A stretch of DNA of 64,000 nucleotides from assembly GCA_030704615.1 (NCBI GenBank), contig CM060733.1:36952001-37016000 (forward strand), written 5' to 3'. Source of the DNA: Takakia lepidozioides (Eukaryota > Plantae > Bryophyta). Within the stretch, counting starts at the first letter, position 1, and the number at the start of each line of letters is the position of its first letter. Shown here piece by piece: positions 1 to 51,761 of this stretch. The translations under genes were made by a program, and so were the position numbers. Below the pieces are notes generated by a model, which saw only the letters and a list, made by a program, of their open reading frames with translations, was not told where the DNA came from and did no database searches.

Positions 1-2485
1 CATCAGAAAAGAAGATGAAGGGATCCACGTTGTCAATGGGTGCCTGAAACTCCTCATCGTCCGTAAACTCATCATAAGAATCATCGGAGTCATCCCCATG
101 TGTTGAGAAGACTTTTGCCTGTTCAGCCCAGCAGAATCAACAGATCATCTCACCAAACAGATGAACATCAGTGTCAGTTCTACGTCCACACTCAGGCCTA
201 AAGGAATCCAGTACAGATTGTGAACATGAAACGAGTAATCCAAATTGAGAATACCCACACTGATTTGAGGACACATGGCTTGACTCTACAAGCATGTATT
301 CTACCTGAGCGGCCATTCTGGAGCTTGTGTTTCAGCTCCTTATCCCAGTCCCCGTCATCACCAGAACGCCAGCCATCCAAATCTTCATCATCCTCATCCA
401 CATCCTCCACCTTACCTAACTCTATAAACAGACCCTCCCAGACATGTCAGAAAGTGAAGGAGATTGAAAAGACATACATGAACATTAAAAGAGCAACTGG
501 GTACTGCCATAACAATGACGAAGACATGTCAAAGACGACAAATATCACAGCATCCAGAAGGCACCCTGCAAAAGAAATACGAATGTCATTAAAACAAGTA
601 GAAACCAACCTGCGTGCTGATCCTTGTAGGCCACAAGCAGCTTGAGGAGAGCCCGGAAAACCTGATCCAGACCTACCTGCAACTCAGGTGGCATTGCTGC
701 CACCGGCACTGGCAGCAAAGATACCATCCTCAATATGCAAACCTTCTTATCATGCTCCCTGTAACACACCATTCCCCAAAATGAGTAATCAGAAGGAACC
801 TCAGGAGCCATATAAACGAGTTCAACAAGCCACTAGTTACAATCAGAAGACCACTTTCTTGTATGTTTCATGGTTAGTTGTTTCATGGTATGTTTCATAG
901 ATAACAGGTGCCAGTCTTCCTTGTATGGCTTACAAATACAACAATACCTCGTAGGAATCAGTACCTGATGAAGTGAACAGGTTTTCCGGTCTTCTTCACT
1001 TCGTAAAGCATTTGAAACCAAGCTTGGAAAACTTCGCCAGTCACTCCCAATTTTTGTAGAATATTGAGACATAGGCCTGCATTGTAGTAGAGCCCATTTG
1101 CAACCTGCAGAAGTAGAATCCCACAAGCCTCGAACTGAAACTCAACCTATTAACTTGCTATTTAAAGTTAAAATGAGCTTTTCAGCAAGGTACATCAATG
1201 GTGTCAGACATCTTTTAAGGGCTAACCAACCAAGGAGCAAACAATTGGCAAAACCTGAAGAAGTGATGTAGGCATGCTTCACACTAGGAAGCACACACAA
1301 CCCCTTCATGATACAACTAATTCAACTCTAATTATTCCAAATGATACACAATGCCAGAAATTGCATGACTATCCGAATGAATTGATGAGTGATATTAAAT
1401 GACAAAAAGGATAGCGAGAGGCGAGGGGCCGGGGGGGTGTGGTGCTTTATCCGTCAACTGAGTCGCGCGAAGGTAAGTTCAGAGACCTGTGAGAGAAAGC
1501 AGACGTACCACTTCCATCACTAAGTCCTTCAAATAGTTCTTCCTGGTCTTTCGAAGACTTTCAACACTGACTTGTAAGTAGGGCTCCACCCATTGACCCA
1601 CACGTCCCCGGCAGTTTTGTAACACTGCCTCTATCAACTTTGGTGCTGGCTCGATATCACTGTCTTCAAGTTTGTCATCTGATAATACCTGTCACATCTT
1701 AACACTTTAAGCAGGTGCGATAAAGAATGTACTCATTAGGGATTGTCTACCGCAGCCTTGTGGCCATAGACCCTGCGTGCCCAGTTTGGGCGGAACAAAA
1801 GCGACCAGAAACTACCTTTGTGAGGGGCTCAATCCGGTAGTGGGACTTACCTTGGTATAGACAATTAGTTCGGGCTTTCCAGATATCCTCTAGAAAGCCC
1901 TTCACACAAGCATCAATCTGCTGTGTGTGAGCAGCCCAAAGTTAGACCCCAACAGGGCCAGGGCGTTAGGCTCAACCTCACGATTTTGGAAGTTGGTGCA
2001 CAGAGGAGCCAGGACAACGTTCTTGATTGTCCAGAAGAGGGTCACTCTATAGCAAGAAAATCCCAGACAATGTATCAGGAAATGGATACTGTAATCAGGT
2101 TGCCACATCAGGCAATTACAATCTCCTCTTCCTCTGTGCATCTGTTTAAAGGTAGGCTTCCCGCCTGGGGTTTAAATTTCAGTCTAGCGCCAAGGATAAA
2201 AAGACAAATATAGAGAGAAACGAAGCTCAACTCAGGATCAGTTTTTGGAAGCACAAGCCAGCAATGAAGAAGCAAGAATAACATCTTCACCTTATCCTTG
2301 CTGTCCCTCATGGAATGTGCAGGTGAGAACTCTCATGGCTTGATGTCACCAAGGATAACATATTTGAAACAGAGCTCTTACCGTGGATAAAATCTTAAAA
2401 AGGCTTTGTTGGTAGTCTGGATCTTTACACAACAAAAAATGCTCCGTACTCCTTGAAATGTAATTATCCATTGGCACCAAAACGT
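1..2485 (-). pseudogene. SAD2: Importin-7/8 (SAD2-like) C-terminal fragment with introns; probable duplicated pseudogene, running off the left edge of the window
   Basis: GT-AG exons 2382-2485 ([34 protein letters not shown]), 1509-1688 (DDKLEDSDIEPAPKLIEAVLQNCRGRVGQWVEPYL), 965-1104 (VANGLYYNAGL...WFQML), 610-758 ([10 protein letters not shown]...[14 protein letters not shown]), 305-421 (acidic tract), 1-118 (AKVF...DDEEFQAPIDNVDPFIFF) match the plant SAD2/importin-7 C-terminus. No SAD2-like exon found upstream of 2485. There is a frameshift near 315 between the DKELKHKLQ and MAAQ|AK frames. Confidence 0.85.
1724..1930. ncRNA. Putative structured RNA / small mobile element, copy 1 (in SAD2-like intron 1689-2381)
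   Basis: Aligns colinearly with 31450-31652. Five predicted helices are retained in both copies, some with compensatory changes. Function and strand unknown. Confidence 0.55.
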
Positions 2486-4604: not shown

Positions 4605-5228
4605 TCAATTCAAGGCGAACCCTAAGTGATAACATAGGAGGAGTCGCTTCGAATCCACATCACCGGTCACAGGGAGGCCATAAAAACGGAGTAGCTCGTT
4701 GAGGGCGTCCTCTGCCAAGCGTGTACATGCAACCTTGCTTGCCGGGAAGCGAGGGGGAATGTCCCCTTCGTCATTCACCACTGGCAGCAAAGGGGAAACC
4801 AACGCCAGGGAAGAGTTTACTATCCTGGATAGGCTTTGCTTCTGCGTAGTACTCACCCTTTGTTCCAAACGTTGGAACCCACCAGCTTGACTGACCTGGA
4901 GTGCCTGCACCGCCTGCACCTGTGCCTGCACTTGTGCCTGGAGTGCCTGCACCTGTGCCTGCACTTGTGCCTGGAGTGCCTGCACCTGTGCCTGCACTTG
5001 TGCCTGCATATTGTTCAACACATTCAAGATGTTCTGCTGCGCTTGCTGCAGGGTCGCCATGTTTTCCCGCATCGACTCCATGCTCCTCGCTATGCGTAAC
5101 ACTGGTAAGTTCTCCAGTTTGGGGACCTCTTCCCCGATAGTTTGGAATGCTACCCCTAGGACAGGGACCTCGACTCCCATAGAGCGGAATGCTGCCCCTA
5201 AGGCTACCATATTAGGCTGTTGGGCCAT
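4605..5228 (-). CDS. Intronless 207-aa coiled-coil protein with a Mug135/DUF1773-like C-terminal domain
   Basis: Clean ORF. N-terminal MAQQPN...EVPKLENLP motif, Q/A-rich heptads, and C-terminal PLLPVVN..GDIPPRFP......L....LNELLRFYGL.......KRLLLCYHLG resembling the fungal family (recalled, not searched). Confidence 0.65.
   Translation of the reverse strand: MAQQPNMVALGAAFRSMGVEVPVLGVAFQTIGEEVPKLENLPVLRIARSMESMRENMATLQQAQQNILNVLNNMQAQVQAQVQALQAQVQAQVQALQAQVQAQVQAVQALQVSQAGGFQRLEQRVSTTQKQSLSRIVNSSLALVSPLLPVVNDEGDIPPRFPASKVACTRLAEDALNELLRFYGLPVTGDVDSKRLLLCYHLGFALN
4895..5008. repeat. 33-bp coding tandem repeat (about 3 copies) encoding QAQVQAQVQAL
   Basis: Repeated cctggagtgcctgcacctgtgcctgcacttgtg units visible directly. 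Confidence 0.9.
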
Positions 5229-21600: not shown

Positions 21601-24600
21601 CTGTAAATAGACCAAACTGGAGAGGGGGGGAGAGAAAGAAACCTTTTAACATTGACTGTACACCAAAGGGCCCAATGGACACAAGTATGCACATAAACTT
21701 TGAGCCCATATAGCTAAAGGCCTCTGCATGAAATACAAAGAAAGATCACAGAGAATGGAGTAATGGCTCCAATAGATTAGATTTTACACCAGAAAATATG
21801 AAATTGATGACAGCACTCCTGCTGTAGTACTTTGGCTTGGTAGCAGAAGGTCAAGACTTGATCTCATAGGTATTTGCTTCTGGACAAATTTTACAGGAGT
21901 CATATGTCGCTTTTGGCTCAACAAAACAGTGATAAGCTCTTCTGGACTCTTCCATCAGTTTTTTAGGGGAATTGAGGCAGAGAAGGATATATTGGACAAT
22001 GCAACCTGATCCATTGATTGCTCTGCCCTCTCAGATGTTACTATGGAGAAACCTCTTCCCCTGGGTGAATAAGACATACTTTCATGAACTTTAAAACCAC
22101 AGCCAATAGCATTCTAATCACCAAACAGTTGAGAAAGCCAACCGACTCTGGATCATGTCTTGACAATCCAACATCCAAAGGAACAGCAATTGAACTACTC
22201 ACAACAGGTCACTGGCTGCTCAAATGACAAACCATTAATCCAACAACGGTACCTGGAGCCACACCACTTGACATGCCAGCTGACCATCATCGACTTGTAA
22301 AGGCCGTGCCTGTAAGGTCAAAGCATCCTCAAGCTGCTCCTCCATTTGCCTCAATTTACCAGCAACAACCACATCCAAATCAATACCACTAAGTTCCATT
22401 AGCTTCCCAAATTCATGCTCATTGTGCTCTAGCTGGCTTGATGGATCCTCGACTCGCTTCTCCCGCCATGTGATCTGCAACAAGACAGATAGCTGTCACT
22501 GCCTTTTTCCAAACTCTGAATCAGCGCCAGCTGCTTTTACAAGTCTCCTACAAGTATCCAGATCAATTTGAGTAACAGTAGGTATGTTCTTGAGGAAATA
22601 TGGTAACCGTCACCTTATGCTAAGCAATCTTGTTTAAAGGACAGAATTGTACAATTTTGCGAGCTGTACCACATACACAAGTCAGTCCATTGTGAATAGC
22701 TACAGATGAGATAGGCAGACCAGGAAGTTACTGGGTTGCTGACAGGAAGTTACTGACATATACCTATATCTTGGAAGACATTGAAAGTCAGTCAACTTTT
22801 GCAACAACTCAACATTCTATTTATCATTACAACCAACCAAGACTCCATCCTCAATCACAAGCAACAACTATTTTGGTATATGTGAAGCCCTTCTCACCTC
22901 CTGCTGCCACTTCTCCCTCTCCTTTCCAGATTCTCCGCTCCTAGTCTCAAGTGGAACTTTGAGGAGCTCTTTCTCAACTGTGCTTGCTGGGATTGAGTTC
23001 CTATCTTCAACCACTCTCTCACAAACTTGGGAGGACAGCCATCCAAAAGATTCATCTTGTTCAGCACTCTTCATCCCGGTGTCTTCAATGCGAGCATGAA
23101 TCTCCTCTCCACTGACAGTCTCACATACGTCACGTGCCTCCAACCTTGACATATCAACACTAGTGGTATTAGATCTACAGAAAGTACAGAATGCTAGTTC
23201 TAGTTGGCTCTCCTATTTGTACCTGGCTATGGCCTGCAGCATCTCATGAGTACATTCTTTGTACGCGGTAAATTGAGATTATTCTCCTCGTCCTCAGGAG
23301 ACATCAAGACTCTTTTATAGTATGTTTCAAACCAGGGCTTGCTCACGTGAGGACCCTTGCCAGTTTGCCTGTGTCTGTCTGTTTTGAGGACTTGGATCAG
23401 CTGACCACCCTGCTGACCACCCTTCTCTGAAAGAGCTTGCATGAGGGGGTACTACTGTTTGCCAACCCAAACTGTCCTTACAAACCAGCCGTCTGCTGAC
23501 CATACAGAAGGACACCCTTACTACAACCACTCTCATAATTTCCAGCATCCTGCTATCACTATCCAGGAAATAGATGAAGCAAACCTGTCTGTTTCATCTT
23601 TCAACCATGTAGCTTCCTTGCTATCTACTACATGCTCTTCACATCGGGTTTCTATGACTCCATGAGCAGCGTGATACTCCAATAGCTTCTGATGCACGGT
23701 CGCAAGCTCACAGCGTGACTGGCAAAGCAGGTCAAGAGCAAGTTTCCCCCATTCTTCCACTGCCCCACTAACTGCAAGCTTCGTCTGGAGTGCTTTCCTG
23801 GAGACATTGCACCAACCCTTGATCCGGGACTCGGAAACAGTGAGCGAATCCCCCTTGGTGGAGAAGGGGGCCCTGACAATCAAGTGCAGATGTTTAGTGA
23901 GCTCCTCAGTTATGGACTCCACAAGTTTAGCAATCTCTTTCACTGCCCACGTGCAGTCTTGATTTGTGATGCAAATGTGCTTGTCTTCCAGCTCAGCGTA
24001 GCAACTTGGTGTGCTAGGGGCCTCTTCGTATATCCTTACCTCGGATATGCTCATGTTGGGTGGAGTCGAATTGTAGGTGCCAATCCTAGCAGGGGATTGC
24101 ACTTCTTGCAATATTTCTGATTGCATGTCATAGTTGCCAGATAATGCTTCCACCTCCACTTTAGGTTCCATCTGTACACGGAGGCCCTCCACCTCTGCTT
24201 TGAGTTGCTCAACGACTTTGAAATGCTTGACTGCCGAGCATCTCCCAACATTGTTCAGTGGTCCAACATCCAGAGAAGCTTCAACTGCCTCTTCCTTGTT
24301 CTGAATTGTCATACCTAACAGCCAAAGCAGCTCTCAAAATCTTGTCCACTATTTCCAACATAAGCTGGCAGGACATGACACATCGCACACCTAGGCTACA
24401 AAACTGTACCAGAGTCGGGAACTGCTTATGGCAATGCCAAAACTGCTCAAAATATACTGAGTGTCAATTTTGAAATCTCACTTGGTGCATGACAGTTTGG
24501 AACCCCTTCCAAGCTCACCTGATGTCCCCATGAGCATGTCACTGACTGATAACGTACTCAACTCCAAATGTAGCTGGAGCCACTGAAGCTCTGCCTGAAG

Positions 24601-27600
24601 TTGCTCGTTAGCACCACGGAGCTCAGCTATGCACTCTTCTTGGAACTTCACTCTCTCAATCACAGTGCCTGTAAACGCACAAATAAGGTGTTTCAGTGAC
24701 AGAGTTTATAAACTTCATCAATCTGCTTTCTTTAAAATAGCATCCGTAAGTTATTGTTTTTGTAGAGGAAATTTGTAATGCCCACAATAATTGTTTATAG
24801 TACCCTGGTGCGATAAGCTCCCTGAGAATAGGATCTGTCCATCAGCTTCGTAGGCATACGACTCCGAATCTAACAGGCCTGGCCCCGACACCTGTACAAC
24901 ATACAACTCAAGGCTGTTCCCTTACAACCTCACAGTGGAAGTGCAGGTCTAGTAGTTCTATGTTTAGATTCCTTTCGCCTTCTCAAGACTTCAAGACCAT
25001 TCTTGTGGGAAAGACATTTACAGTAATCATTAGCCATGCAGATCGCTAGCCAGGTGGAGTTTGCTTACCTAGAGATCCTTAGATGTATAAGGAGACAGGA
25101 ATTATAGCTTTCATTCACACTCCTACAAAAACCACAAGTTCAGTTAAATTGAAAGGCCAAGACATTCACCCAGATTTCTGTCTGCTCGTTGATGCCTGAT
25201 TGAGGGTGTAGCTATCTCCACTTTCAAATCCCCACAAGTTTGCTGGACCCCCAAGAGGTCACAATCCAGTAAGACCTTCTCTGTCTCGATGACATCAAAC
25301 TTAGCAGCTTCCACCATGACACTCAGACAAGTATTATTCATCTCTCCAAGCATGTACTCTTCAGACTTGCCCTCTTTTCTTCCGCTAAGCTCCTTAATTT
25401 TGTGACTCACTGAAGCCTCTGATAAAGATTTCAGCTTATGAGAAGCTATCTCTATCGTACTGTTGGCTTGGAGTATGGTTTCACCGTATTTGCCAATACC
25501 TAAGGAAGAAAATTCCACACTCCCTGATTCTTTGCTTTGCATATTGATAGGCTCCCCCTCATACAGTTTAGCAGCCTGTTCTTCCACATCCAACACTCCA
25601 TTGTCAAGTTTACCCAAAGAAGACTTCGAGGCTTCAAGCTCTTGAGCGATTCCATCTCTCTCTTTCTTAGCTTGAAGGACATCTTCATCCACCGTCATCA
25701 CCCTTACTGCACACTCATCTAAGAAAATTCTCTCTTTTTCCTTAACGGCAAGTAGTTCTTCCTCTTTCCTTTCCAAAATTTCCCTAAGTTTGGCAGTGGT
25801 CGCAAAGGCTTCATCAAGACTCTTCAGCAGCTGCAGATTCTCACTGGCCACGAGCAGCACGCATTTCCCCCTGGACTCTGCATCTTTGTCAAGCAGTTGA
25901 TTTGCCATGTATCCCTGCACTGCTTTTTGCAAATCCCTACTTATCTAAATGGGTTCCAAGCGTTCCAGGTAGAAAGTGCCCTGATACCTGTAGATCACCT
26001 TCCAGCTTTGCCTTGAACAACTCTGAAATGTCTTCATTGACTCCCTCATTGTCTGCCTCCTGAAGCTTTTTAGTGTACCATGCACTCTCTTTGGCTTCTC
26101 TCAGTTCTCGGTCAGCTTTCTGCATATAAACACAGAATATGCTTATTTTACCAGTGCAGCAAATGCCTTTGCCTCACAGCCTCTGAGCCTTGACAGACAC
26201 TTCCATCATGCTACTGCTCCATCCCATTCACCTATCAGTAGATGTTGATAGACCACACAAAAGCCATTGTTCATGGCCCTTCAACGTCATCTATGCAATT
26301 CTTTCAAAATTACTCCGCGCAAGGCCTCTGTACTGCATTCACCTTGATGGCCAGCTGTAAATGTTGATTCTCCATGACCAGGTTCTCTGCTTGGACTTCA
26401 GCTTCTCTCCGCCGGGCTAGGGCAGCTACAGCGTCATCTCGTGCATCCTTTACCTACAATTTCACCACTGTTATCAGTGTGGACGGTGGTGAAAGACAAA
26501 ATGTATCATCTAGAAAGATTGCAGCAACCTTTTCAGAATAACTTCAACATGGACAGTATAAAAGGCTGTTAAAGATGACAACCTCCTTTGCCATCATACC
26601 TTCCAGATGGCTCCCCTCCTAAATTAGTTCATTAACTGCCAGATCTCTAAAAGACTTCACCTCACTAGAGGGGCAATGTACCTGGGCCTCTAGTTCCTCC
26701 ACACGATGCACCGAAGCCTGTTCAGTTTGAGCACGCAACTCGCGTTCTTGTTCCACCATCTCCATTAGTTGGTACCTTAGCTCTGCCATCTCCTGGGTCA
26801 AGTCCTCGGCTTCATCTTTCGCCTTTACTTTCTCCTCCATCAATTCTGCCTGAAATCAAAACATGTTACCCTACTGCAAATCACTAGTATACATCTTGTC
26901 TCTCTCATGCTTGCAAATTGTCTAGAGAATACCATGCCAACCATCGCAGAGACTATGGATATTCCATGGATGCTCTTAAATGACTTCCCTGCCCAGTCAG
27001 TTTCTGGTCTGGGACTCCTAAGCAGATGTAAGGCAGTATCCAAGAACTTGGCCATACCTTCGATTGGGATACAACTTCTCTCAGCTCCTCAAGCTCCCGC
27101 ACTTTCACATGAAGATCGTGTGCAGCATTCTGTGCCTTAACCTCTGCATCTGCAAGCCTGGTATGCAGCTCATTGAGTTCCTCTCCCGTAGCCAGTGATG
27201 CTTCTCCAAGCTCCAGGAGCATCTGTATTGAACTACTTTTGGGGGTCCTGGGGGACACCGGCATCTCCGTGTTCAAATACCCTTTCTTCACAGGTGTGAG
27301 GAGAAAGTCAAGCTCACTGTTGCCACAGCTACCATGTTGAAACTCGCCCTCCAAGTCAGCCACACGGGCCTCCCATTCTGCTCTCTCTTTTGCCCAGTCA
27401 TCTTCCCTCCTTGCATGCTGCCCAAACAGCTCTCAATGTGAGACTCTTCACAGCTTTTCAAATCCCATGGTGATGATGTACCCCATATCAATTGTGCATG
27501 AATGCGAAATCCCATTGATGGTACATAGCGATCTCGAAAGGCATCCAGCTAAGAAAACAGAGCTTGCACATAAAGATTTGACCAACAACAGACTTGACAG

Positions 27601-30600: not shown

Positions 30601-32316
30601 CCCAGACAAATGTTGGCTAACAGCTGCATGGGACCCCTCAGAATATGAAGACTGTCCACAGTCAGTAGCATTTTATGTCACTTGCATCTGGGGGACTCTC
30701 TATTGAAGCTGTTGCTTTGAGTTTGGAAAAAATCTTCCAATTGTCTCAACATGGAGCATCACAGTCTCCAACAGCTTCATATGGGTAAACTACGTCACAT
30801 TTACACAAAAAAGGTGATACATTCCCAGATAACTGAGGCTGTCTCAGTGAAGGAATGGACATTGCTACAACAGATGAAGACAGCAAGATAGCAATTGCCC
30901 TCTCAATTGAGAATTGTTTCATCCAGCTGAGGTACTTCAAAGCAGCAGTGATCAGTGCTTACAGCGGTAACTTATGGCTTGCTCCACAGCTGTAATTGGA
31001 CAAGGAAGTTTCTAAAACATATCTGGCACATTGTTTAGGAATCCCTAGGTCCCTGCAGATTTCTCATACTAGAACAAAAGATTGTTGCTCCCTCCTTTGA
31101 AGCACCCTTAACCTCCAAGCATAACTGTCCTGATCCGAGAGGGCCACAATGTCAAGAGCACCATTCTCCTAATTAAGGGAAGCAGAGGGGCAGATGGTGC
31201 ACATAAAATTAAAAGACAGGAACCCAACCACATGATTTTAAACATACCATGAAGTCCTGACCGGAAGACCAGCCATAGGGAAGTGGAGACTCCACCATTT
31301 CTGGCTCCTTTGCCTGCGAAACACCCCTCTGACAGCAACGTGAATTTGTCTGTACAAGAACAACATACTCTTTCCGTGCAACTGAGGACAGGAAAGGAGA
31401 AATTGTATACTCAATGATTTCATTTGCCAGACGTGACACTCCTTGGCACAGAATGTACTCATAAGACGTTGTTTGCCTTAGCCTTGTGGCCATTGACCCC
31501 GTGCTCACTTTGAGCGGAACACAAAGGGACAGAAACTACCATTGTCATGGGCTGACACCAGTAGTATAACTTACCTTGGAACAGACAATTGATCCGAGGT
31601 TTCCAGATATCTCTAGAGATCCCTTTACACAAGCATCAATCTGCTGTGTGTGGTTTGGCACAGAGAAAAGAGGACACCAGGGAAGGACAGGAGGATTACC
31701 ATTCACTGCAGAAAGCTGTTTGTCATTTGTCAAACTGAGACATACTGCACTTGCTAACTGAGGACTAATCAGTGCAGTGACAGTTGGTACTTTGAAGAGG
31801 ACCCCTATTCAGAAGAAGACCCACTGAATACCATCAGAACACATAGGTTGATAATGGAATGGCCACGTGATGTGGGTGCCAGTAAGGCATGGTCACCCTG
31901 GGGAGAGAAGAGGAGAAAAAAAGAGAGGCCACATTTTATTCTTTTCACTACAAAATAGGGTATGTTGGGTGTAACATTCAAGCCAACCAGAACAGTACAT
32001 TGCCATGCTTGCACATTGGTGGTTGAGAGAAACAAAGAGATCCTCTTAAACCTGAAATGGAAAAGCGACTGTCTGCCACAATACCTCTTCCACCAAGGAG
32101 GACGACAATAAATATGTGTCTCCCTCCCCACCTCTGCCTCTTGGGGCACTGTCTTGATCTGTGAGTTATGCATGCACCCATCGTTTGCATTCTTGCACTT
32201 GGACTCATTTCAAAAACCAGCCTCAAAGCAAAGATCTAGGAGGAACACGGATGTATTACCCGTGACTTGCCCAGACGCCAGCTCCCTGACTTCCATTTCT
32301 TGGATCCGGTGGACAT
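18650..32316 (-). CDS. Large multi-exon coiled-coil protein; central part resembles the plant 'myosin heavy chain-related' At5g07890/At5g61200-like family. Both ends approximate
   Basis: Heptad-rich exons at 19789-20600, 20775-21270, 23230-24312, 25170-25932 and 27056-27400. EEKVKAKDEAEDLTQEMAELRYQL...EQASVHRVEELEAQV (26682-26843) matches the family C-terminal motif. The start MSTGSKKWKSGSWRLGKSR at 32316 is tentative. Confidence 0.7.
31450..31652. ncRNA. Putative structured RNA / small mobile element, copy 2 (probable intron of the coiled-coil gene)
   Basis: Homologous to 1724-1930. Flanked by the 10-bp direct repeat TTGGCACAGA (31443-31452 and 31655-31664). Confidence 0.55.
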
Positions 32317-34388: not shown

Positions 34389-37300
34389 TCAACAACCACC
34401 TTCAGACTCATGGGGAGGCCAACCAAACTGATTACTCAAAACATCCCTTGAAACCTGCCCGAACCCATTTGAGATTGCAAGCATAGACCTGAAAGTGTGC
34501 AGCCCTTCTTGCACCTTCTCAGACTGGTCTTTCAGATTGGCCATCAGGGTGTCACAATCTGCGATCGATAGCCCTAAAGTCTGCTCAGCATATTTAAACC
34601 GAGCAGTCTCAAGGTGCTGTTGCTGGCCCAGAATCAATCTTTTCTGTGCAAGTAGTGCTTCTTTGGCACAAGCATACTCAGCGACCTGTGACTGCTTTAG
34701 CTTCTGTAAAGCATCTGAAATGTTCTGCTCATAGTGTGATTCCAGTCGATCTATCGGGGTACCCAACAGCACAGGGGAGCTGGACCCGTTGAGGAGAGAG
34801 CTAGAGGAAAGTAATAAATCCTTGGTATTTGACCCCAGGATTTGACCAGAACTCTCCAATGCAGGTACTGTACTGTATGAACTTGAAGCTGCAAGTCCTG
34901 AAGAAGTCAAAGAGCTTTGTGATACCAGCATCTCCCCTGCCCCACTTGTCATCATCTCTGTCTGGGGCAACACCCCAACTGGGCATGCATGGAAAGTGGA
35001 CCTTGCTTGACCAGTTACCAGACTGCCATCACCATGCCTAACAACCTGCAGACTAGAATTTCCTGTTTCTAACCCAAATCCCCCTACCAAGCTTGACACT
35101 GCACCAGGAGAGGGTGTCTGGTAAGCTACAACTGCTTGGGATGTTTGAGATATCACCAGAGGAACTGTCAGTTGCCCGGCGTCCTTCACCCTGTTAGCAA
35201 GGGCTTGGCACTCCTTCATATGGTCATCTATTGAACCAGTTTGGTTTATGGTCCAATCCATATCACTGACTGCTGATAATGCTACTCCACTGCTCTTCTC
35301 GGTATGATCTGGAGCTGACATGTCAGATGCGAATTCTTCCTTATGAGCTAAAGGCAAAACCTTGGGGCCTTCTGTGGTGGCTCTCTCCTCTGGTTCAAAT
35401 CCCTCATTGCAGGCAGATATAGTATCAGGCAGAGGCAAACCCTTAGTACTTACTGTGGTGGCTTTCCCCTCTGCTTCGCATCCTTCACTGCAAGCAGCTT
35501 TTGTATCAGTTGCATCTGGTAAACCATATGGGCTGCCCCCCTCAGCTTTGCATCCTTCATTTTGGGCAGGTTTTGAATCAGTATCCGGTGAATCATGACC
35601 ATTGGCTTTGCTGTCCGCGTGGGAAGTGAAGCTGGAAAGAGTGGCTGGTGTGGGGCGGGAAAGTGGAGTGCTGCAAGATGGAAGCCACTGGTCTAGACTA
35701 GCCTCAGAGTGATGAACAGCGCCTTCTTCAAGCACACTCCCTGGTCTTCTCAAGGCCTGCTGCTGCTTGCCTGTCCGTAGGATAATCCGCGATTCATGTC
35801 AGTTGTGCTTCAGAGTGCGCAAAAGGGGGGCAATGCGAGGTTTGTTGACATTGTCTCAAAGAATGAAAGCATGCTTTGCTTGCACATTCACTTAGTTCGC
35901 CCTGTCACACCATCCACTAATGTTGTACAACTGTGCCATCTGGTTTCATTAGATATTCAGGGAAAAGAGCCTGTCCAAACTGTTAACCTGCTGAAAGATG
36001 ATGCAAACATATCCTGTACTAACGATAATTAAATCATCATTATTCTAGACCTTATATACCTTGCACATACCGAGCATGCCTGAAAAGAAGTTACCTGCAT
36101 CAACAGCATTAGATTTATCTTGCAAATCTCTGAACACCTCCTGAATTGATTCTCCATTTTGAACCTGCCACTCCAATTGCCCTCCAGAGTCTTAACACAC
36201 AAACTCTGACTCAGATAAGACCACAAAAAACAGCACCCACGAAACAGTGGAAAAGCTGAGCTGAAATCAGCATACAGCCAATAGACTTGCATATAACATT
36301 CCCCACAAAGACCTTCCGACCAATACGGACCTTTTTAAGAGCTGTATCAACTAGAGACACCAGAATCATTCCTTGCCCATGCTGTGTGCCTTGCATTATC
36401 TGAAGTGCAAGCCTCAGGCTTTTCTCAGCCTGGGGCCTCATGGTCATGCCTTCTATATCATCAAGCAGGTGAGTAACAAGCTCTCTCAGATCCGTTTTCC
36501 AATCACACCGCCGGCAGAGATACTCTATATCAATCTTGTTTTCCTTCACAACCCCAGCCATTTGGGATGTCAGTGCACACTCGAGGTGAGCCGCATGCCC
36601 ACAAATGCCGGCCGCCTGTGAAGGCCTGTTCAAGCACCGTATCGAATTGCTTCCATTAACATCTGACCGGAGGTCTTTGCAGCAAAGAAGGCACTTACAC
36701 TCCCGGCAAAACCCCGGCTCTGAGCAACAAATGTTACACGGCAAACCTCCTAATGGTCCTGAGAGTAGACTATTCCCTGTTTCCAGGCCACACTGAGGGT
36801 TCTCTGACTGACATCCAGTCCTTGACTTTTTCGCCGAACTTGGCAATTTTGCATCATCACGAGGTGGCCTTCCTTGCTTGGCTGAGACTTCCCTTGAAGC
36901 TGCAAAGTGCCAAGATCGAATCCATTATCAATAGTTTTCTGTGTAGAGGTGACATCATCTGTAAGTCCCAGACATGAGTTAGAAGCGCGCTACATTGTTA
37001 ATTTCCTGCAACAATCTTGATGGCGACGTGCTTCCTGTACTGACAGCTCTACTGTCACAACAGAGTGGCACAGAACATCGATTTGTCAATTGCAACAAAA
37101 CCTACTAAAGATGACTGAGCACTGAACAAATCAACAAAAACTTGAATATTCAACTACAATACTGAAAAAGAGATTGGTCTATTGATCAGACAGCCTTCAC
37201 TATCAAATTGGAATTAGCAACAACAGCCGATGGCCAATGCAGCTCCAGTAGGATGAGACACATGGCACCAAATCAACAAAGACCATGAGCAATGTGGATG

Positions 37301-38755
37301 CTACCAGTAAAGCTCAAATATACTGCCCCGGTGCACATAATTGCGTCCAAATCTTGATACATCACTTCACTCTCTCAATGCTTCCATAAACGTATGCAAT
37401 AGTGTAGAGCATTAAAGACTGGATTGATGATTCCTACCTGGGAGCAGAATTCTTTTGTTGAAGAGAAAATACAAATGTCCCGTGGCATTTAATTGGCTCA
37501 CACGTCAGGGTTCACTTTGAATGAGCATCATATAAGATGTTGCTCAAGAAGCCCTGTTACACTACCCCCAAAATGCTGAAGCTGATTGGCGGTGTCCCAC
37601 AGGAGTCAAGAGTACAAAATTGTCTAAAACCTCTAGAAGTCTGTTCTTTCCACCGGACAACAAGATTCTTTGGAAGACCAGGGGAAGGTAAGAAATCCCT
37701 GTACCTTCTGAAGAAAGAGGGCCTCCACTGGCACCGGAAGAAGGCACTTTCCACTGGAATGAGTTGAAAAATCTTTCGACATTTACTCCTGTAAAGTTCT
37801 TCTTAAGGTATTCAGTAATGCTCTTCCTGCTGGCAAAGTCCGTGATCTTTCTACCTCTGGCCAAACTCTTGGGAAGGAATAAATATCTGTCTATCCAATA
37901 CCCATTGCTGGCTCGTTTTCCCACCCTCCAGCCCCATTTATCATCGGGACTTGGCCATCCCTGTGGAGCATAAGGCCAACCCTCTCCCCTTTCACCTGCC
38001 ATGACGGGCCTTCGGGGACAAGATTCCTCGTTTGGAAGTGGTGGAGGTCCAGACTTTACAATGTGCGAGTCTGTAGGAAGCCTTTTCACCCCTATGTTGT
38101 CTTCAGGGCACAATGCAGGATCTACACCGGGGTTAGGCATGGAGGCGCCGGCGCTCTCTGGTTTTGAGGGACAGTCGATCTTATGCGTATCTGAAACAAG
38201 TTCCGTAGAGAGAGAACGAGACCCATCAAATCTGCTTGGTGCTGGAGACATTGCAGACAAAGAAACCAAAGCGCCAGGAGGTGATAGAGATGTGGAAGTT
38301 GGTTGTGGTGAGATAACTCTTTCGTTCAGATTCGAATCGTCTAAGCACGAAGGAGATGGTGAGGATGTGAGTCCCACAGATACCGACAAACAAGGATTTG
38401 CACCTGCTATTGTTGCACTTGCAACTGTACTTGTTTGAGGTAGAGGTGATGAAAGAGGCTCCAACGGTGAAGGTAAAGTGGACTGTGATGACTGCGAAAC
38501 GGATGCGACAGCAGATGGCGGCTTCATTGCAGGAATTGAAAATGCCATGCGTGCAAGACTTGTCGAGCCTGGTTGCAAGGCTGACAGACAATCGGAAGAT
38601 TCACCTAATGAGGACGATGCTATTTCCGACCGAAGCAAGTTAGAGAAAGACATTGACGGATCAAGAGAAGACAACCGTGAGACAGGCTGCGAAGCTAAAG
38701 CTGGAGGAGAGGAGAAAGCTGCGGAATCGGAGACCGAAGGGGGTGTCCGTACCAT
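34389..38755 (-). CDS. Oberon-like PHD-finger protein (At1g05410/At3g22520-like)
   Basis: GEGWPYAPQGWPSPDDKWGWRVGKR...DRYLFLP...FASR...FFNSFQWKVP domain, then CNICCSEPGFCRECKCLLC...CGHAAHLECAL...MAGVV...EYLCRRCD, then a C-terminal LQKLKQSQVAEY...LLAQK coiled coil. Exons about 37705-38755, 36331-36900, 36095-36165 and 34389-35770. Confidence 0.85.
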
Positions 38756-39678: not shown

Positions 39679-41353
39679 AAACATTCCCGCGAAGGATCGT
39701 GGCCCTCCCAGTTTGGAAAAGCTCTTCTTGAGGCTTTTGATGTCTCGTGGGCCAAGAGCACCCTCCTCTCCACGCCTATTCACGAACTCAGACAGCATGA
39801 TTCACTCCCCGGCATTGGGACCTAGCCTAGTGATGGAGAAGAGAGGGACGCAAATTGGAGGCACAAACGCATTCGCAATGGCAAAATCAAGCCTCGATTT
39901 CGTTTAGTTGATTGAAAGGGCCCGTCCCCTGCTAAAGAGATTGGGTGTGTGTTATTGTCCATCTCTGGGGTCGGGGCTTTGGGTCTTGTTTTTCATGCTT
40001 ACTTATGTAGGGATTCTTTGGTTAGCAGACCATATTGAGGTTGGTAGAGACCCCTTGTTTGATGTTCGGATCTTCTAGTTAGAGTTTCGAATTCCCAACC
40101 CTCGTCTTGGGCCTTTGTTTTCGGAGGAGTTGAGGATGATGACGAATGTGGTCTGGTTTCTAAGGGAGCTCTTCCATCTCTTGGAGTTTGGGTTGGCTTG
40201 GATAGTGGAGTTGGAAGCTACCCAACTCATTTTTGTCTTTTCAGCAACTAGAACTTGCTTACAAGCTCATTTCCCCTCTCTCACCTTTTTAAGCCAAATG
40301 GAGTGGCAAATGGCCCATATGAACACGTCGATTCATCGGAAGTTCTAAAGTAATATTTACAAACGAAAGTTTGGTACTCTCCCAAGCTTGGAGAACGATT
40401 TTGATTGGCCTAACAAAGATATTTTTTCAAGCCTCGTGTTGCATTTGACATGACCGTGTAGCTTCATATATGTTATATGCAAAAAGATCATCTAGCTCCT
40501 CGCATCCAGCCCCGTGCCTTGCATTTGTTTTTTTCACACTCCATATGAATAAACATGACATTTTCGTGTAAAAGACGGAATGTGCTGACACGATATGGCA
40601 TGTTGAGCGCACTCCCGTGGGGTCAAGAATGGATTGCACCGTGTCATGGTTTTAGTCATGGTTATCTAGAATTACCTACTTCTAGTTAACTAGGACATTT
40701 TAGATATTTATATTTATATTTTGTGTGTTGGGACTTCTCACATGCCAAGTGAGGTGTCGAGCCTCACTTGAGACATGGAGATAGGTTTTCCCCTTGTGAG
40801 TGTTGAGGAGGCTCATCTTCTTGTAGTTGAGCCTCCATGAGCTTCTCTCACCTCCATAGCTCTAGGTATTGAGAGGGAGTGTGTTGAGGGCTTTGTAGGG
40901 TGGATTCCTTTAGCAAAGGTGTCCTTCGCTTGACTTAGTTTATGTGATAGAGTGGATTTCACTTGGAAGGACTAGGGCTTGTTCTTCATGTGATTGCTTC
41001 ATGCTTTGAGTGTCGCGCACCTCACTTCGGTAAGCTCCCATTCAAGTCATAGTTACTCGCTTTGATGCGCGCGCCTAACTCCCAACCTGGCCGCCGGGCC
41101 AACTTGGAGCTTCGGCTGCTCACCGGGGCATAACGGTCCCCCTTTGATCTCCCAAGAACCCTCCACCGATTTGGGCCCAGCGGGAATTCCCTTTGGTAGT
41201 TGGCAGTCCGGAACATCTCCCCAATTTTTGGTCGCTTTCCGGCTCGCTCGCTTACTCACTAGTTTTTGGTCACCAACGGGCTTGCACCGTTCTCGGGGTT
41301 ACTACTCCCTATATATACTTCTGTAGCTGTCCGCGGGGGTTTCACAAACAACC

Positions 41354-44300
41354 TGTTCCGGACTGCCATCTAACAAAGGGAATTCCACTAGTCCCAAATA
41401 GGTAGAGGGTTTAGTGGGAAGCGAAAGGGGACCATTATACCCCGGTGAGCAGCCGAAGCTCCAAGTTGGCCCGGCGGCCAGGTTGGGAGTCAGGCGCGCG
41501 CATCAAAGCGAGTAACTATGACGTGAAGGGGAGCTTACCGAAGGGAGGTGCGCGACACTTGGTATCAGAGCTTAGAGTTCAGTACACGATCGTCCTTGGG
41601 ATTGGCCTCATAATGGGTCGGGCAAGCCGAAGCGAAAGCGGAACGGCCCAAAAGATGATGATCCTGGTGAGCCCGATGGTCACCGAGGCGGCCGTTTGAG
41701 GAAGCGATGAATGTTTCCGAAAACGAGGCCGCTCAAGAGCGGGAGGAATCCGAGGAGTCGGAGCCTGAGGAATCCTTGAGAGCTCCGACAAACCAAGAGA
41801 TGCCTCCCATGTCGGCAGCCTTTTGGGAAGGGTTGTTGGCGCAGTTTGGCGGGACGTTGAAAGACGTGTTGAAGGCGGCTAATGCCACTTCCACAAAGGC
41901 AAAGTTTAAAGTGAAGCCTAAGGAACCCGGCACCTTCGAGGGCGTCCGAAATCGGAAGGCACTCAACACCTGGCTCCTGGAGCTAGAGGTACTTCGAGGA
42001 TCGGGTGGAAGTGGCTCCTACCTATTTGAGGGGCTATGCTCAACAATGGTGGCAGAAACGCCTTCACGACCGAGGTCCAAGCCCGGAAACCTTGAACTAG
42101 AGTGGGTTCAAGGAATTGATGAAGAGACAGTTTGTGCCCCCTCAACGCGTCCTGGCTTGCCCGGACAAGATGAGGAATTTGAAGCAAACAGACGACATTC
42201 GGGGATATGTCCAGGCTTTCAATGTGCTTTTGCTCGAAGTCGCGGATATGGCAGAACCGGAAATGGTCTTCAACTTTGTGGCGGGACTGAAGACCGCGTG
42301 CAGGACAAGGTATGGTTCATATGAGTTCTTGTTAATGCCTTTTGGGCTCACCATGCACCTGCGACCTTTAGCACGCTGATGAACAGCCTTTTCTAGGAGT
42401 GGTTGGATGACTTTGTGATCGTGTACATCGACGACATCTTGGTGTATTCGAAACAAAAGGAGGAGCACCTGGAGCATCTCGAAAGGGTGTTCCAGAAAAT
42501 TGCGAGAAGGAAGCTGTATGCCAAAGCTTCAAAGTGCGAATTCGGGGTCACAAAGTGGAGTTCCTGGGGCATGTGATTACACAGGATGGGAATCAAAATG
42601 GATGACAGGAAGGTGAGGGCAATTTGGACTGGGAGCCTCCGACTTCGGTCCCGGGAGTGTGATCCTTCCTAGGACTCGCCTCCTATTACCGGAAGTATGT
42701 GAGAAATTTCGCCAAAAATCGCGGGGCCGCTGTCAGACCTTCTGTGTAAATCTAAAGTCTGGGCATGGAACACCTTTTGTGGCCAAGCTTTTGCTGAATT
42801 GAAGCAGCGGATGGCGGAAGCTCCAGTCTTGAAATCCCGGAGTTCGATCGTCCGTTTGAGATATATACAGATGCGTCGGACTTCGCGATTGGTGGTGTGC
42901 TGATGCAAGATGGACGTCCAGTGGCTTACGAAAGTAAGAAACTGAATGAAGTGGAATGACGGTGGCCGACGCACGAGAAAGAGATGAAGGCGGTGGTGCA
43001 CTGTCTTGAGCTTTGGCGCCACTATGTTGGTTCCAACCCAGTGAAGGTGTTCACGGACAATGTCACGGTGAAGTATTTTGCCACGCAGCCAAGTTGTCCC
43101 CAAAACAACTTAGGTGGCAAGATACTTTGGCGGTGTTCGACGTGGATATCCAGTACAACCGGGACGAGACAACGTGGTGCCGATGCTTTAAGTAGAAAGC
43201 AGCAGCTCTTGTAGGTGTACAAGGGCGAGACGGCGCTCCAAAGGAAGATCCGGAAGGCGTGCCGGAAGGATGAGCTGGCAAAGTCCGTGATGCAGGACTT
43301 GAGGATGGGGGTTAAATCGCAGTTCCACTTCAAAATTGGACTGCTCTGGTATAAGCAAAGCGTCTCTACGTGCCGAAGGGAGGGATCAGAGATAGCCTCT
43401 TGAGAGAATGCCATGATAGCCCGCTTGCGGGCCACGGAGGAGCCAAGCGCACTGCGGCACTCTTGAAGAAAGAGTATTTCTAGCCCAAACTGAGGGAGGA
43501 GGCGGAGGAGTATGTCAAGACATGCACCACATGCCAACAAAACCGGAGCGAGTACAAAAAGCAAGCGGGGCTGTTACAACCCTTGCCGATTCCAGAGGGG
43601 ACTTGGGAAAGCGTCTCGATGGATTTCATGACTGCTATGCCGCTGTCAAAAGGATTCGATGCAATCATGGTGGTGGTGGATAGGTTCAGTAAAATGGGTC
43701 ATTTCATCCCCACCAAGGAGACGGCAACGGCGCAGGAGACAGGGCGACTTTACTTCGCCCACGTCTTAAAGCATCATGGAGTCCCGAAGGATATTGTCTC
43801 GGACCGCGATCCAAAGTTTACGAGTAAATTTTGGAGGGCACTTTGGAAGAAGATGGGGACGAGGCTGAAGATGAGCACCGCCTTCTGACCTACGACCGAC
43901 GGCCAAACAGAAAGAGTGAATTCCGTAGTGAAACAGATCCTGCGGAATTACGTGTCGGCAGACCAAACAGACTGGGTGGAACACTTAGACGCGGCAGAGT
44001 TCTGTTATAATAACACAGAACACTCCGCAAAGAGAGTTTCCCCTTTTGTATTGGTCTATGGAAAAGCACCCCTGGTGCCGACAAGTTGGGCCGCCCAGGA
44101 CGTCGAGGAACCGGCAGTAGCGGCGATACTGGAAGAACGCGAGCGTTAGTTGAAGCTCGCAAAGTACAACATTGCCAAAGCTAGGAAACGGTATGAAAGG
44201 CAGGCGAATCGGAAGCGGAGGGAAGTGAAGTTTGAGGCAGGCACGGAGGTCTGGTTGAACATCAAGAATTCCCGACTACCTCCGGAAGTGAGTCCGCCGT

Positions 44301-46303
44301 ATGCGAGACCCTTTCACATTCGGAAGGTTATGAATGAGGATGTGTATGAATTGGAGCTGCCGGCAAACAGCAAGGTGCACCCCGTATTCCATGTCTCCCT
44401 TTTGAAGCCTTACTTCAAAGATGAAGTGCGTCCGAATCGGCATCAAGTGTTGCGTCCGCCACCTATGCTGTTGGATCATGAAAATGAACCTGAGTACGAG
44501 GTGGAGGCAATACTTAAGTCGAGGAGGTTCAAGAACCGAGAAACGGAGTATCTCGTCAAATGGAAGGGCTATCATCATGTGGAGGCATCTTGGGTGCGTG
44601 CCTCAGAAATGGGAAACGCATCCGAGGCGGTTGCAGCTTTCGAAGGGCGACCTCCAAAGCGGAAGAAACGTTGATAGGGACATCAACCTTGGAGCGTGGG
44701 GGAGGAAATGCATGCTTAGCCCGGCTTAGCTAGCTCAGAAATTCGATTACAAAAACTTGTATTGTACAAAAATTTGTTATAAAGGAAATGGGTTCCAAAT
44801 GTTGTGCGTCCTATTTTGTTTGGAATGGTGATGCATGGTATGGTTGGCTAGTCTGTACAATGCATGCTAGCTTATAAAAGTGGGAGAGGTAAATTGGGTT
44901 AATCGTGTGTTTGCGTAGTGCCGAAATCGGGTGACCCCCATCCAAGGGGCAAGGAAACTTGCGACTTTCTTTTGGAGTTCACGTGCTAGGCGCACCTGGC
45001 GCGTGCGTGTACTATAACTGCGCTAACCGAGGGGGTTGCCTTGTAGTGCGGGCTAACGTGGAAGCTACGTGCTTCCGTTCACGTACTATAATCGTGTAGC
45101 CTCGGGACGAAGTCGTAGTGCGGCTTCGGCGTGTTCCCATACCTCAGGCCAGCATTCCAAGGCGGACCCAATTGTAGTGATTGGGCGCACGGTTGGTTCA
45201 AGGTTATCTTCCTAGTCAAACAGGGTTCCAGGGAACCCTTGCTTAAGGTGATGCCAAAAGCGGCATCATGAGCGATCGCAAGCAATGTTGTTGCAGTAAG
45301 GCGATTCGATCCTCGGGGAGGATCGTTCCTTGGCCTTGAAGTAGGCCAAGAAGAGTGCACTGGGAGGAGCTGGAGAGGCTCCACCCTTGGCCGGGACTTG
45401 GAGGAAGTCGGCCGAACTAGCTAGTGGAGAGTAGAGTCAAGTGTGGGGTTTGGTTCTTTGCCATGGGATGCCATGGTGCGGAAACAAACTCCTTGATGTG
45501 GGACGCCACATCTTGGATGTTCGTTTCTACAAAATGGACAAGTCGATGAGGACATCGACTCCCTGTTGGTAGGGGTGTGTGTCGCGGCCCTTTGCCTTGA
45601 GGGCAGGGGGTCGGGACACATGAGGGGCTGCCCCTGTGGTGGGGGCATCGGCAGCGATAGGTATGGGGGGCTGAAGCACCCTTGAGTGCCCAAAGCACTG
45701 AAGGAGGCGGAGGCGCTCACTAGGTGGAGCCCCGCACACCGGGTTGCGGTGGGGGTGGCTCCACAAGGGGTGGTGGTAGCTTAGCGGGACTTAGTGGGGG
45801 TGGCATAGGACTCACCATGGGGGCGGAGACCTCGTGGTGGGAGTCGTGGGGAGTCTTGGGACTCATCACGGTCCATAGGGGCCGTGGTGAGTGGGCCAAG
45901 ACTCACCGCGACTCATCACCGGAGTCGAGGGTTTTCGTGGTGGTTCGCCATAAAATGGCATGGCTGGTTATGAAACCCCCGCAGACAGCTACAGAAGTAT
46001 ATATAGGGAGTAGTAACCCCGAGAACGGTGCAAGCCCGTTGGTGACCAAAAACTAGTGAGTAAGCGAGCGAGCCGGAAAGCGACCAAAGAGTGGGGAGCT
46101 GTTCCGGACTACCATCTACCAAAGGGAATTCCACTAGTCCCAAATAGGTGGAGGGTTTAGTAGGAAGCGAAGGGGGACCGTTATGTCCTGGTGAGCAGCC
46201 AAAGCTCCAAGTTGGCCCGGCGGCCAGGTTGGGAGTTAGGCGCGCGCATCAAAGCGAGTAACTATGACGTGAAGGGGAGCTTACCGAAAGGAGGTGCGCG
46301 ACA
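41354..46303 (+). mobile_element. Chromovirus element A, internally deleted, inserted in opposite orientation into element B
   Basis: Partial 5' LTR 41354-41557; PBS TGGTATCAGAGC 41560-41571. Gag is joined directly to RT near 42288 (about 1.45 kb missing relative to B), followed by RNaseH, IN and chromodomain (44150-44674). PPT GGTAGGGG precedes the full 3' LTR 45580-46303. Confidence 0.9.
45580..46303 (+). repeat. Complete ~724-bp LTR of element A
   Basis: TGTCGCG...CGCGACA termini; near-identical in reverse complement to 51762-52488. Confidence 0.92.
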
Positions 46304-47144
46304 CAAGTTGTGGCGTCCCACATCAAGGATTTGTTTCCGTACCATGGCGTCCCATGGCAAAGAACCAAACCCCACACATGACTCTACTCTCCACTAGCTA
46401 GTTCGGCCGACTTCCTCCAAGTCCCGGCCAAGGGTGGAGCCTCTCCAGCTCCTCCCAGTGCACTCTTCTTGGCCTACTTCAAGGCCAAGGAACGATCCTC
46501 CCCGAGGATCGAATCGCCTTATTTGCAACAACATTGCTTGCAATCGCTCATGATGTCGCCTTTGGCATCACCTTGCGCAAGGGTTCACCTCAAACCCCCT
46601 TTGACTAGGAAGATAACCTTGAACCAACCGTGCGCCCCAATCACTACAATTGGGTCCGTCTTGGAATGTTGGCCTGAGTACGGGGACACGTCGAAGCCGC
46701 ACTACGACTTCGTTCCGAGGCTACACGATTATAGTACGTGAACGGAAGCACGTAGCTTCCGCGTTAGCCCGCACTACAAGGCAACCACCTCGGTAGCGCA
46801 GTTATAGTACGCGCACGCGCCAGGTGCGCACTAACACGTGAACTCCAAAAGAAGGCGCATGTTTCCTTGCCCCTTGGATGGGGGTCACCCGATTTTGGCA
46901 CTACGCAAACACACGATTAACCCAATTTACCTCTCCTACTTTTGTAAGCTAGCATGCATTCTACACACTAGCCAACCACACCATGCATCACCATTCCAAA
47001 CAAAATAGGACGCACAACATTTGGAACCCATTTCCTTTATAACAAATTTTTGTACAATACAAGTTTTTGCAATCGGATTTCTGAGCTAGCTAAGCCGGGC
47101 TAAGCATGCATTTCCTCCCCCACGCTCCAAGGTTGATGTCCCCA

Positions 47145-50100
47145 TCAACGCTTCTTCTGCTTTTGAGGTCGCCCTTCGAAAACTGCAACCGCCTCGGATG
47201 CGTTTCCCATTTCTGAGGCACGCACCCAAGATACCTCCACATGATGATAGCCCTTCCATTTGACGAGATACTCCGTTTCTCGGTTCTTGAACCTCCTCGA
47301 CTTAAGAACTGCCTCCACCTCGTACTCAGGTTTATTTTCATGATCCAACAGCATAGGTGGCGGACGCAACACTTGATGCCGATTCGGACGCGCTTCATCT
47401 TTGAAGTAAGGCTTCAAAAGGGAGACGTGGAATACTGGATGCACCTTGCTGTTTGCCGGCAGATCTAGTTCATACACATTCTCATTCATAACCTTCCGGA
47501 TGCGAAAGGGTCCCACATACGGAGGTACGAACTTTGGACTCACTTCCGGAGGTAGTCGGAAATTCTTGATGTTCAACCAAACCTCCGTGCCTGCCTCAAA
47601 CTTCATTTCCCTCCGCTTCCGATTCGCCTACCTTTCATACCGTTTCCTAGCTTTGGCAATGTTGTACTTTGCGAGCTTCAACTAACGCTCGCGTTCTTCC
47701 AGTACCGCCGCTACTGCCGGTTCCTCAACGTCCTGGGCGGCCCAACTTGTCGGCACCAGAGGTGCTTTACCATAGACCAATACGAAAGGGGAAACTCTCG
47801 TTGCGGAGTGTTCTGTGTTATTATAACAGAACTTTGTCACGTCTAAGTGTTCCACCTAGTCTGTTTGGTCTGCCGACACGTAATTCCGCAAGATCTGCTT
47901 CACTACAAAATTCACTCTTTCTGTCTGGCCGTCTGTCGTAGATCGGAAGGCAGTGCTCATCTTCAGCCTCGTCCCCATCTTCTTCCAAAGTGCCCTCCAA
48001 AATTTACTCATAAACTTTGGATCGCGGTCCGAGACAATATCCTTCGGGACTCCATGATGCTTTAAGACGTGGGCGAAGTAAAGTCGCCCTTTTTCCTGTG
48101 CCGTTGCCGTCTCCTTGGTGGGGATGAAATGACCCATTTTACTGAACCTATCCACCACCACCATGATTGCATCGAATCCTTTTGACAGCGGCATAGCAGT
48201 CATGAAATCCATCGAGACGCTTTCCCAAGTCCCCTCTGGAATCGGCAAGGGTTGTAACAACCCCGCTTGCTTTTTGTACTCGCTCCGGTTTTGTTGGCAT
48301 GTGGTGCATGTCTTGACATACTCCTCTGCCTCCTCCCTCAGTTTGGGCCTGAAATACTCTTTCTTCAAGAGTGCCGCAGTGCGCTTGGCTCCGCCGTGGC
48401 CCGCAAGCGGGCTATCATGGCATTATCTCAAGAGGCTATCTCTGATCCCTCCCTTCGGCACGTAGAGACGCTTTTGCTTATACCGGAGCAGTCCATTTTG
48501 CAAGTGGAACTGCGATTTAACCCCCATCCTCAAGTCCTGCATCACGGACTTCGCCAGCTCATCCTTCCGGCAAGCCTTCCGGATCTTCCTTTGGAGCGCC
48601 GTCTCGCCCTTGTACACCAACAAGAGCTGCTGCTTTCTACTTAAAGCATCGGCCACCACGTTGTCTCGTCCCGGTTTGTATTGGATATCCACGTCGAACA
48701 CCGCCAAAGTATCTTGCCACCTAAGTTGTTTTGGGGACAACTTGGGCTGCGTGGCAAAATACTTCACCGTGACATTGTCCGTGAACACCTTCACTGGGTT
48801 GGAACCAACATAGTGGCGCCAAAGCTCAAGACAGTGCACCACCGCCTTCATCTCTTTCTCGTGCGTCGGCCACCGTCGTTCCACTTCATTCAATTTCTTA
48901 CTTTCGTAAGCCACTGGACGTCCATCTTGCATCAGCACACCACCAATCGCGAAGTCCGACGCATCTGTATGTATCTCAAACGGACGATCGAACTCCGGGA
49001 TTTTCAAGACTGGAGCTTCCGCCATCCGCTGCTTCAATTCAGCAAAAGCTTGGCCACAAAAGGTGTTCCATGCCTAGACTTTAGATTTACACAGAAGGTC
49101 TGACAGCGGCCCCGCGATTTTGGCGAAATTTCTCACATACTTCCGGTAATAGGAGGCGAGTCCTAGGAAGGATCGCACTCCCGGGACCGAAGTCGGAGGC
49201 TCCCAGTCCAAAATTGCCCTCACCTTCCTGTCATCAATTTTGATCCCATCCTGTGTAATCACATGCCCCAGGAACTCCACTTTTGTGACCCCGAATTCGC
49301 ACTTTGAAGCTTTGGCATACAGCTTCCCTTCTTGCAATTTCTGGAACACCCTTTCGAGATGCTTCAGGTGCTCCTCCTTTGTTTTCGAATACACCAAGAT
49401 GTCGTCGATGTACACGATCACAAAGTCATCCAACCACTCCTGGAAAAGGCTGTTCATCAGCGTGCTAAAGGTCGTAGGTGCATTGGTGAGCCCAAAAGGC
49501 ATCACCAAGAACTCATATGAACCATACCTTGTCCTGCACGCGGTCTTCTCCTCATCTCCTTCCGCCACCCGAATTTGATGATAGCCGGAGCGCAAGTCGA
49601 TCTGGCTGAAATACTTCGCTCCTGCCAACCGATCGAAGAGGTCGTCGATCCTTGGCAAAGGGTACCGGTTTTTGATAGTCACCTTATTCAGAGCCCTGTA
49701 ATCGACACACATCCGCAACGTCCCATCCTTTTTATCTGCAAATAGCACCGGGGCTCCGTAAGGTGACTTACTCGGCCGGATGTACCCCTTTGACATTAGA
49801 TCTTTGAGCTGAGTCTTCAGCTCGACCAACTCCCTGTGGCTCAACCGGTAGGGCGCCTTGGCAGGCGGTTCCGATCCCGGTATCATCTCAATCTTGTGGT
49901 CAACTCCTCTTCGCGGTGGCAAACCGCTTGGTAAATCCTCCGGCATCACATCCTGGTATTTCTCCAAAATCCCCCTGATCCAATCTGGGCTCGGCTCCCC
50001 ATCGCCTTCTCCCTTCACTTCTCTAATGTAGAGCAAAAACTGGGGCTCGTGTGCCTCCTCCACGACCCACTCCCTTGCTGATAGAAGGTTTACTCGCCCT

Positions 50101-51600: not shown

Positions 51601-51761
51601 ATCGCTCCCTCAAACGGCCGCCTCGGTGACACGTCGCCCCCATCGGGCTCACCAGGATCATCATCTTTTGGGCCGTTCCGCTTTCGCTTCGGCTTGCCCG
51701 ACCCATTATGAGGCCAATCCCAAGGACGATCGTGTACTGAACTCTAAGCTCTGATACCAAG

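Follow-up and report, generated by a model that had tools for sequence, protein, structure and literature searches.

A short repeat with a fixed 3′ end, put forward as a structured intronic RNA, is probably a non-autonomous retroposon

Two stretches of about 200 nt that match each other from end to end raise a simple question: do they represent a structured RNA that the genome maintains for a function, or copies of a mobile element? The original prediction for this locus described them as a structured element with compensatory substitutions, shared by introns of two unrelated genes, and offered four readings: a new intronic non-coding RNA (ncRNA), a ribozyme, a splicing-regulatory cassette or a SINE-like family. 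We examined this question across the window, that is, the whole 64-kb stretch of DNA analysed here, which is eukaryotic, has 47.8% G+C and contains plant-type genes together with Ty3/Gypsy elements. The evidence on the family comes from two full copies (A and B) and one fragment (C), all from this one 64-kb window.

The relationship between the two full copies was borne out. Over their whole length, copies A (1724-1930) and B (31450-31652) are 82% identical (blastn E 2e-50), and their similarity breaks off sharply at both ends, leaving flanks that are unrelated. The motifs quoted for them are likewise all present, including GCCCA/TGGGC, which becomes GCTCA/TGAGC, the stem ACTACC...GGTAGT, the closing helix, the 26-nt hairpin and the three blocks that are all invariant, the CAAG/GTAAGT sequence on the minus strand and the ...GAGTACATTCT end. 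At the 5′ end, A and B start at the identical nucleotide, which favours a discrete unit of about 205 nt. The limits of the two units are listed below.

1727-1930, minus strand of the window (the sense strand of the unit): copy A, full length, about 204 nt
1724-1726, minus strand: TCT directly after GAGTACAT at the 3′ junction of copy A, belonging either to the end of the element or to the beginning of the target
31453-31654, minus strand: copy B, full-length unit of about 202 nt, with the same 5′ start as A plus two extra junction bases

The window was then searched for further copies with blastn, with nhmmer --max and with an unfiltered covariance-model search. Beyond A and B only copy C was detected, bringing the total in the 64-kb window to three. 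This copy, which the original prediction had missed, lies on the strand opposite to A and B and retains only the 3′ end of the element. Both blastn and nhmmer recovered it (E 0.01-0.035), as did a covariance model built on the 3′ domain (E 0.011), and its ungapped alignment with the final 35 nt of A and B shows about 77% identity (hand count). All three copies end in the terminal 13-mer ATGAGTACATTCT, which occurs 3 times in the window against 0.09 expected, and in 3 out of 3 copies GAGTACAT is followed by TCT. For A and B the RNA strand of the element is the minus strand of the window, for C the plus strand. Comparison of the junctions revealed direct duplications around B and C.

23223-23257, plus strand: copy C, 5′-truncated, 33-35 nt, 3′ end of the element only (blastn, nhmmer, covariance model)
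23216-23222, plus strand: target-site duplication of C, 5′-side copy, TTTGTAC (7 nt; 9 nt with one mismatch)
23258-23264, plus strand: target-site duplication of C, 3′-side copy
31655-31664, minus strand: target-site duplication of B, 5′-side copy
31443-31452, minus strand: target-site duplication of B, 3′-side copy, TCTGTGCCAA on the sense strand

The duplication around B is a perfect 10 bp, and a 10-mer common to both junctions is expected by chance with P of about 0.003 (20000 random placements); in this copy the TCT belongs to the duplicated target. For C, the 7-mer has a P of about 0.08 under random placement, yet it falls exactly at both junctions. Copy A has no recognisable target-site duplication, since the only sequence common to its junctions is a 5-mer (P 0.69). 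The flanks upstream of B and C are 70-73% pyrimidine.

A stretch of 41 nt at 24759-24799 on the plus strand is 78% identical to element positions 35-75 (blastn E 8e-4), the similarity ending there; it is either a very old internal fragment or a chance match. A scan of metagenome DNA with the invariant 22-mer returned no match, and a scan with a gapped 3′-end pattern returned 18 matches, all of them unrelated coding sequences.

A fixed 3′ end, one-sided 5′ truncation and target-site duplications of unequal length (10 bp in B, 7-9 bp in C, none recognisable in A) together point to target-primed reverse transcription by a LINE enzyme, and the same three features do not fit a cellular RNA gene or a DNA transposon. 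We therefore consider A, B and C to be, more probably than not, copies of a short non-autonomous non-LTR retroposon. Such an element could be either SINE-like without a recognisable Pol III head, or an internally deleted derivative of a LINE. A SINE in the strict sense carries a Pol III head derived from tRNA, 7SL or 5S, and none was found here: ARAGORN finds no tRNA in the window, with a very relaxed threshold its single match lies in A, on the complementary strand, B giving none, and Rfam searches up to E 10 return no tRNA, 5S or 7SL match in either copy. Inside the 64-kb window there is also no LINE with a shared tail. Among the four readings first offered, it is the SINE-like family that these features support.

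The surroundings of the copies are consistent with insertion. Copy A lies inside a 692-nt intron on the minus strand, with the donor G at 2381 and the acceptor AG ending at 1690; it has the orientation of its host gene, and its 3′ end is 34 nt from the acceptor. From the exon translations we take this host to be an importin-7/SAD2-like gene. The host exons were searched singly, and the best PDB match of the exon downstream of A is Xenopus importin 7, residues 732-785, a weak one (E 0.13). The location in introns of two genes, as first proposed, holds in this way for A; copy B is placed only between two genes, in the roughly 5.4 kb that separate an OBERON-like PHD gene from a long coiled-coil gene. 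Copy C lies between two long ORF blocks of the coiled-coil gene, opposite that gene's strand.

34392-38755, minus strand: OBERON-like gene of the PHD-finger type, three long exons carrying the domains PHD_Oberon, DUF7081 and DUF7615

With the exon just downstream of A as the query, five related contigs of bryophyte-like type (L001-L005) were retrieved, in which this exon is 78-84% identical in protein. In L001-L005 both exons flanking the intron of A are present, 70-84% identical in protein, and the orthologous intron spans about 95-310 nt compared with 692 nt here. Neither the element nor its GAGTACAT end left any trace in these five contigs, the orthologous intron included. As far as these sequences allow us to judge, the element is an insertion and not a conserved part of the host intron. 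Insertion into CT-rich DNA just before TCT is also the simpler explanation for the host orientation and for the location towards the 3′ end of the intron; the invariance of the terminal block, too, is explained by how and where the element inserts.

An alternative that deserves serious weighing, unlikely as we hold it to be, is that A and B are ordinary 5′-truncated LINE copies, each consisting of the last 200 nt or so, and that there is no separate short element. The 3′ end common to three copies would be expected in this case, and copy C shows that 5′ truncation does occur. Copy A also carries a 60-codon open frame that ends 26 nt before its 3′ end, which made it a candidate for the final part of a LINE ORF2, as could be the case if the LINE had a short 3′ UTR. 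However, two independent truncations are unlikely to have left A and B with the same starting nucleotide, and the frame shows no coding signature. It is broken twice in B and its stop codon is not conserved, which speaks against the candidate ORF2 end. The differences between A and B are distributed over the three codon positions as 7:10:14, with 8 synonymous and 16 non-synonymous codon changes, which carries no coding signal. An exhaustive HMMER search of the element's ORF against 1.84 billion representative proteins yielded no LINE ORF2, its four matches being spurious ones to repetitive proteins, Pfam was blank, and so was a word-based protein search, which is limited by the length of the query.

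We give a small chance to the proposal that the element is a functional structured intronic ncRNA (snoRNA-like, regulatory or catalytic) that is under selection and was spread by retroposition. What recommends it is above all the fold. On the minus strand, A folds with -74.3 kcal/mol (z -4.0) and B with -64.2 kcal/mol (z -2.6), which is unusually stable, against z values of -1.9 (A) and -1.0 (B) for the opposite strand; the strand that folds best is the one with the fixed 3′ end, that is, the strand of the would-be retroposon RNA. In the predicted consensus, the RNA of the element would comprise two 5′ hairpins and a multi-branch 3′ domain and end in ...AUGAGUACAU(UCU). The parts of the predicted fold in copy A are as follows.

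1904-1928, minus strand: 5′ hairpin 1, a 9-pair stem with a 6-nt loop, unchanged between the two full copies
1872-1900, minus strand: hairpin 2, 12 bp in A, of which only the inner 6 bp are retained in B
1743-1864, minus strand: multi-branch 3′ domain, in which a closing helix encloses three hairpins

The three clear compensatory changes all fall in the 3′ multi-branch domain (column pairs 73/182, 101/109 and 142/150). As a null for covariation, the minimum-energy structure of one copy was taken and the differences of the other copy were permuted among like bases; 3-4 double compensatory changes between A and B were observed, against an expectation of about 0.8 (P 0.004-0.04). To this extent the proposed preservation of pairing is upheld, but of the 62-68 pairs that the fold of one copy predicts, 10-14 fail in the other, which is near the 15-18 of the null. 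In copy B the GGGCTTTC/GAAAGCCC stem is eroded on the sense strand, and the evidence from wobble pairs is mixed, one stem favouring the minus strand and the closing helix the plus strand. A comparison of two sequences such as this one gives a hint of structural constraint and weakly suggests a selected fold.

The element has further traits that a functional RNA would share, namely invariant terminal blocks, the 26-nt hairpin and an ACA a few bases from the 3′ end. It resembles the intron-encoded snoRNAs (H/ACA and C/D) and the retroposons derived from them in that it is intronic, sense-oriented and structured with this ACA near its 3′ end. Unlike the intron-encoded snoRNAs, it has no conserved H box (ANANNA hinge), no C/D boxes and no hairpin-hinge-hairpin layout, matches no Rfam family and is not conserved at the orthologous site. 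At gathering thresholds, no Rfam family in the whole window matches the element, and with E up to 10 the two copies give chance matches only (U7 hairpin, mir-506, sR4 and lncRNA fragments), none of them common to A and B; the original prediction had described the element as unrecognised, which agrees with this. Catalytic RNAs fare no better. The motif nearest to a hammerhead, CUAAUGAG, does not have the core G, no Rfam ribozyme family appears at E up to 10, and an HDV-like layout appears unfit on our reading of the predicted folds, in which hairpin 1 is simple and would leave no P2 strand.

The ncRNA, ribozyme and splicing-cassette readings are accordingly not supported, given the blank Rfam result, the orthologous intron that is empty in five contigs, the duplications at B and C and the truncated copy C, a 35-nt fragment with its own target-site duplication that points to a mobile element. 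Nothing beyond the weak compensatory signal speaks positively for a new functional ncRNA or ribozyme.

A slim chance remains for a more unusual reading, in which the element would be a structured retroposon lacking a promoter and residing in sense-oriented introns, its RNA being supplied by transcription of the host. The spliced intron would be trimmed down to the fold, in the manner in which intronic snoRNAs arise, so that the 5′ end would come to lie at the base of hairpin 1, and the donor-like site, by binding U1, would aid nuclear retention or processing; or else the family would have been domesticated as an intronic regulatory RNA.

The donor-like site itself bears on two other questions. 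Read directly from the sequence, it has the following position.

1845-1854, minus strand: 5′-splice-site-like CAAG/GTAAGT inside the element

Together with CACACACAG at the start of the element, this site could delimit a candidate 70-nt, frame-shifting pseudo-exon, placed at 1855-1920 on the minus strand, in the importin-7-like gene. It might also be taken as the relic of a captured or retro-copied piece of a host gene, made up of about 70 nt of exon up to CAAG/GTAAGT and about 130 nt of intron. This we find highly improbable: although the frame of A is open up to the perfect donor site and 4 of 9 changes in the first 26 codons are synonymous (hand count), the putative exon has no counterpart in either of the protein searches described above, its frame is broken in B, and the 3′ end and TCT junction are shared with the independent fragment C. 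In the retroposon reading, the splice-donor-like site would be a passenger feature, with occasional exonisation possible. Least credible of all is a DNA transposon or MITE, or an intron-creating introner-like element, for despite the short length, sharp ends and splice-site-like motifs the two ends lack the complementarity of terminal inverted repeats, the duplications are unequal, copy C is truncated on one side only, and the host intron is already present without the element in relatives.

The window holds several other repeats that are observations in their own right. Two arms of about 210 nt, at 40642-40850 and 61712-61928, are 99% complementary and 21 kb apart; they flank nested Gypsy copies and a Gypsy element with a DNA methyltransferase, and may represent the termini of a large DNA transposon or a boundary left by a recent inversion or duplication. 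Two Ty3/Gypsy copies of the chromodomain type occupy 41009-52486, about 95% identical and inverted, with many collinear inverted-repeat blocks. At 55075-61701 a Gypsy-type element includes a C-5 cytosine DNA methylase domain among its ORFs (PF00145, E 6.6e-13, 57806-58591). Four to five tandem units of 88-92 nt, which are 80-96% identical, form an array at 53859-54326, and a short-period repeat (12/21/33 nt) at 4901-5006 falls in a 207-aa ORF whose AQVQ(A/L)Q repeats suggest a coiled-coil-like protein.

If the three copies do belong to a short non-autonomous retroposon, known systems offer two kinds of comparison. LINEs of the RTE clade have short derivatives, such as Bov-tA and Bov-A2 for Bov-B, and RTE-X types appear in plant repeat annotations. 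The element resembles RTE-clade LINEs and their derivatives in its 3′ end without poly(A) and in its presumed priming by microhomology at the target, and their short derivatives may lack a tRNA head, as it does. The proteins of stringent-type LINEs recognise a stem-loop in the 3′ tail that they share with SINEs (PMC4176376, PMC1636434), and UnaSINE1 is an example of a SINE copied through its folded 3′ tail by such a LINE, UnaL2 (PMC1636434, PMC4176376). Like the SINEs of stringent LINEs, our element is short (about 205 nt) and dispersed, with three copies in the 64-kb window, has a fixed 3′ end, variable duplications and a 5′-truncated copy, folds stably on its RNA strand and has no poly(A); unlike them, it shows no detectable tRNA, 5S or 7SL head, and its shared tail is presumed.

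A mechanism can be proposed along these lines. A partner LINE, itself devoid of a poly(A) tail, would nick CT-rich DNA right before TCT; the end of the element RNA would pair with the nicked DNA, and the LINE reverse transcriptase would copy the RNA into the site. The outcome would be target-site duplications of variable length and, at times, insertion of only the last few dozen bases, as in copy C. The fold, or at least its 3′ part, would probably serve as the handle by which the LINE enzyme recognises the RNA, and such a role would account for the compensatory changes, few as they are. As for the 5′ hairpin, which is invariant, it may mark where the transcript starts or an internal promoter.

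What appeared to be a candidate for a new structured RNA or ribozyme thus gives way to an ordinary mobile-element explanation. To our knowledge, short dependent elements of this sort are poorly catalogued in seed-free plants. For the importin-7-like gene, the perfect donor inside the element and the acceptor 34 nt away from it may have a minor effect on the host through the predicted pseudo-exon.
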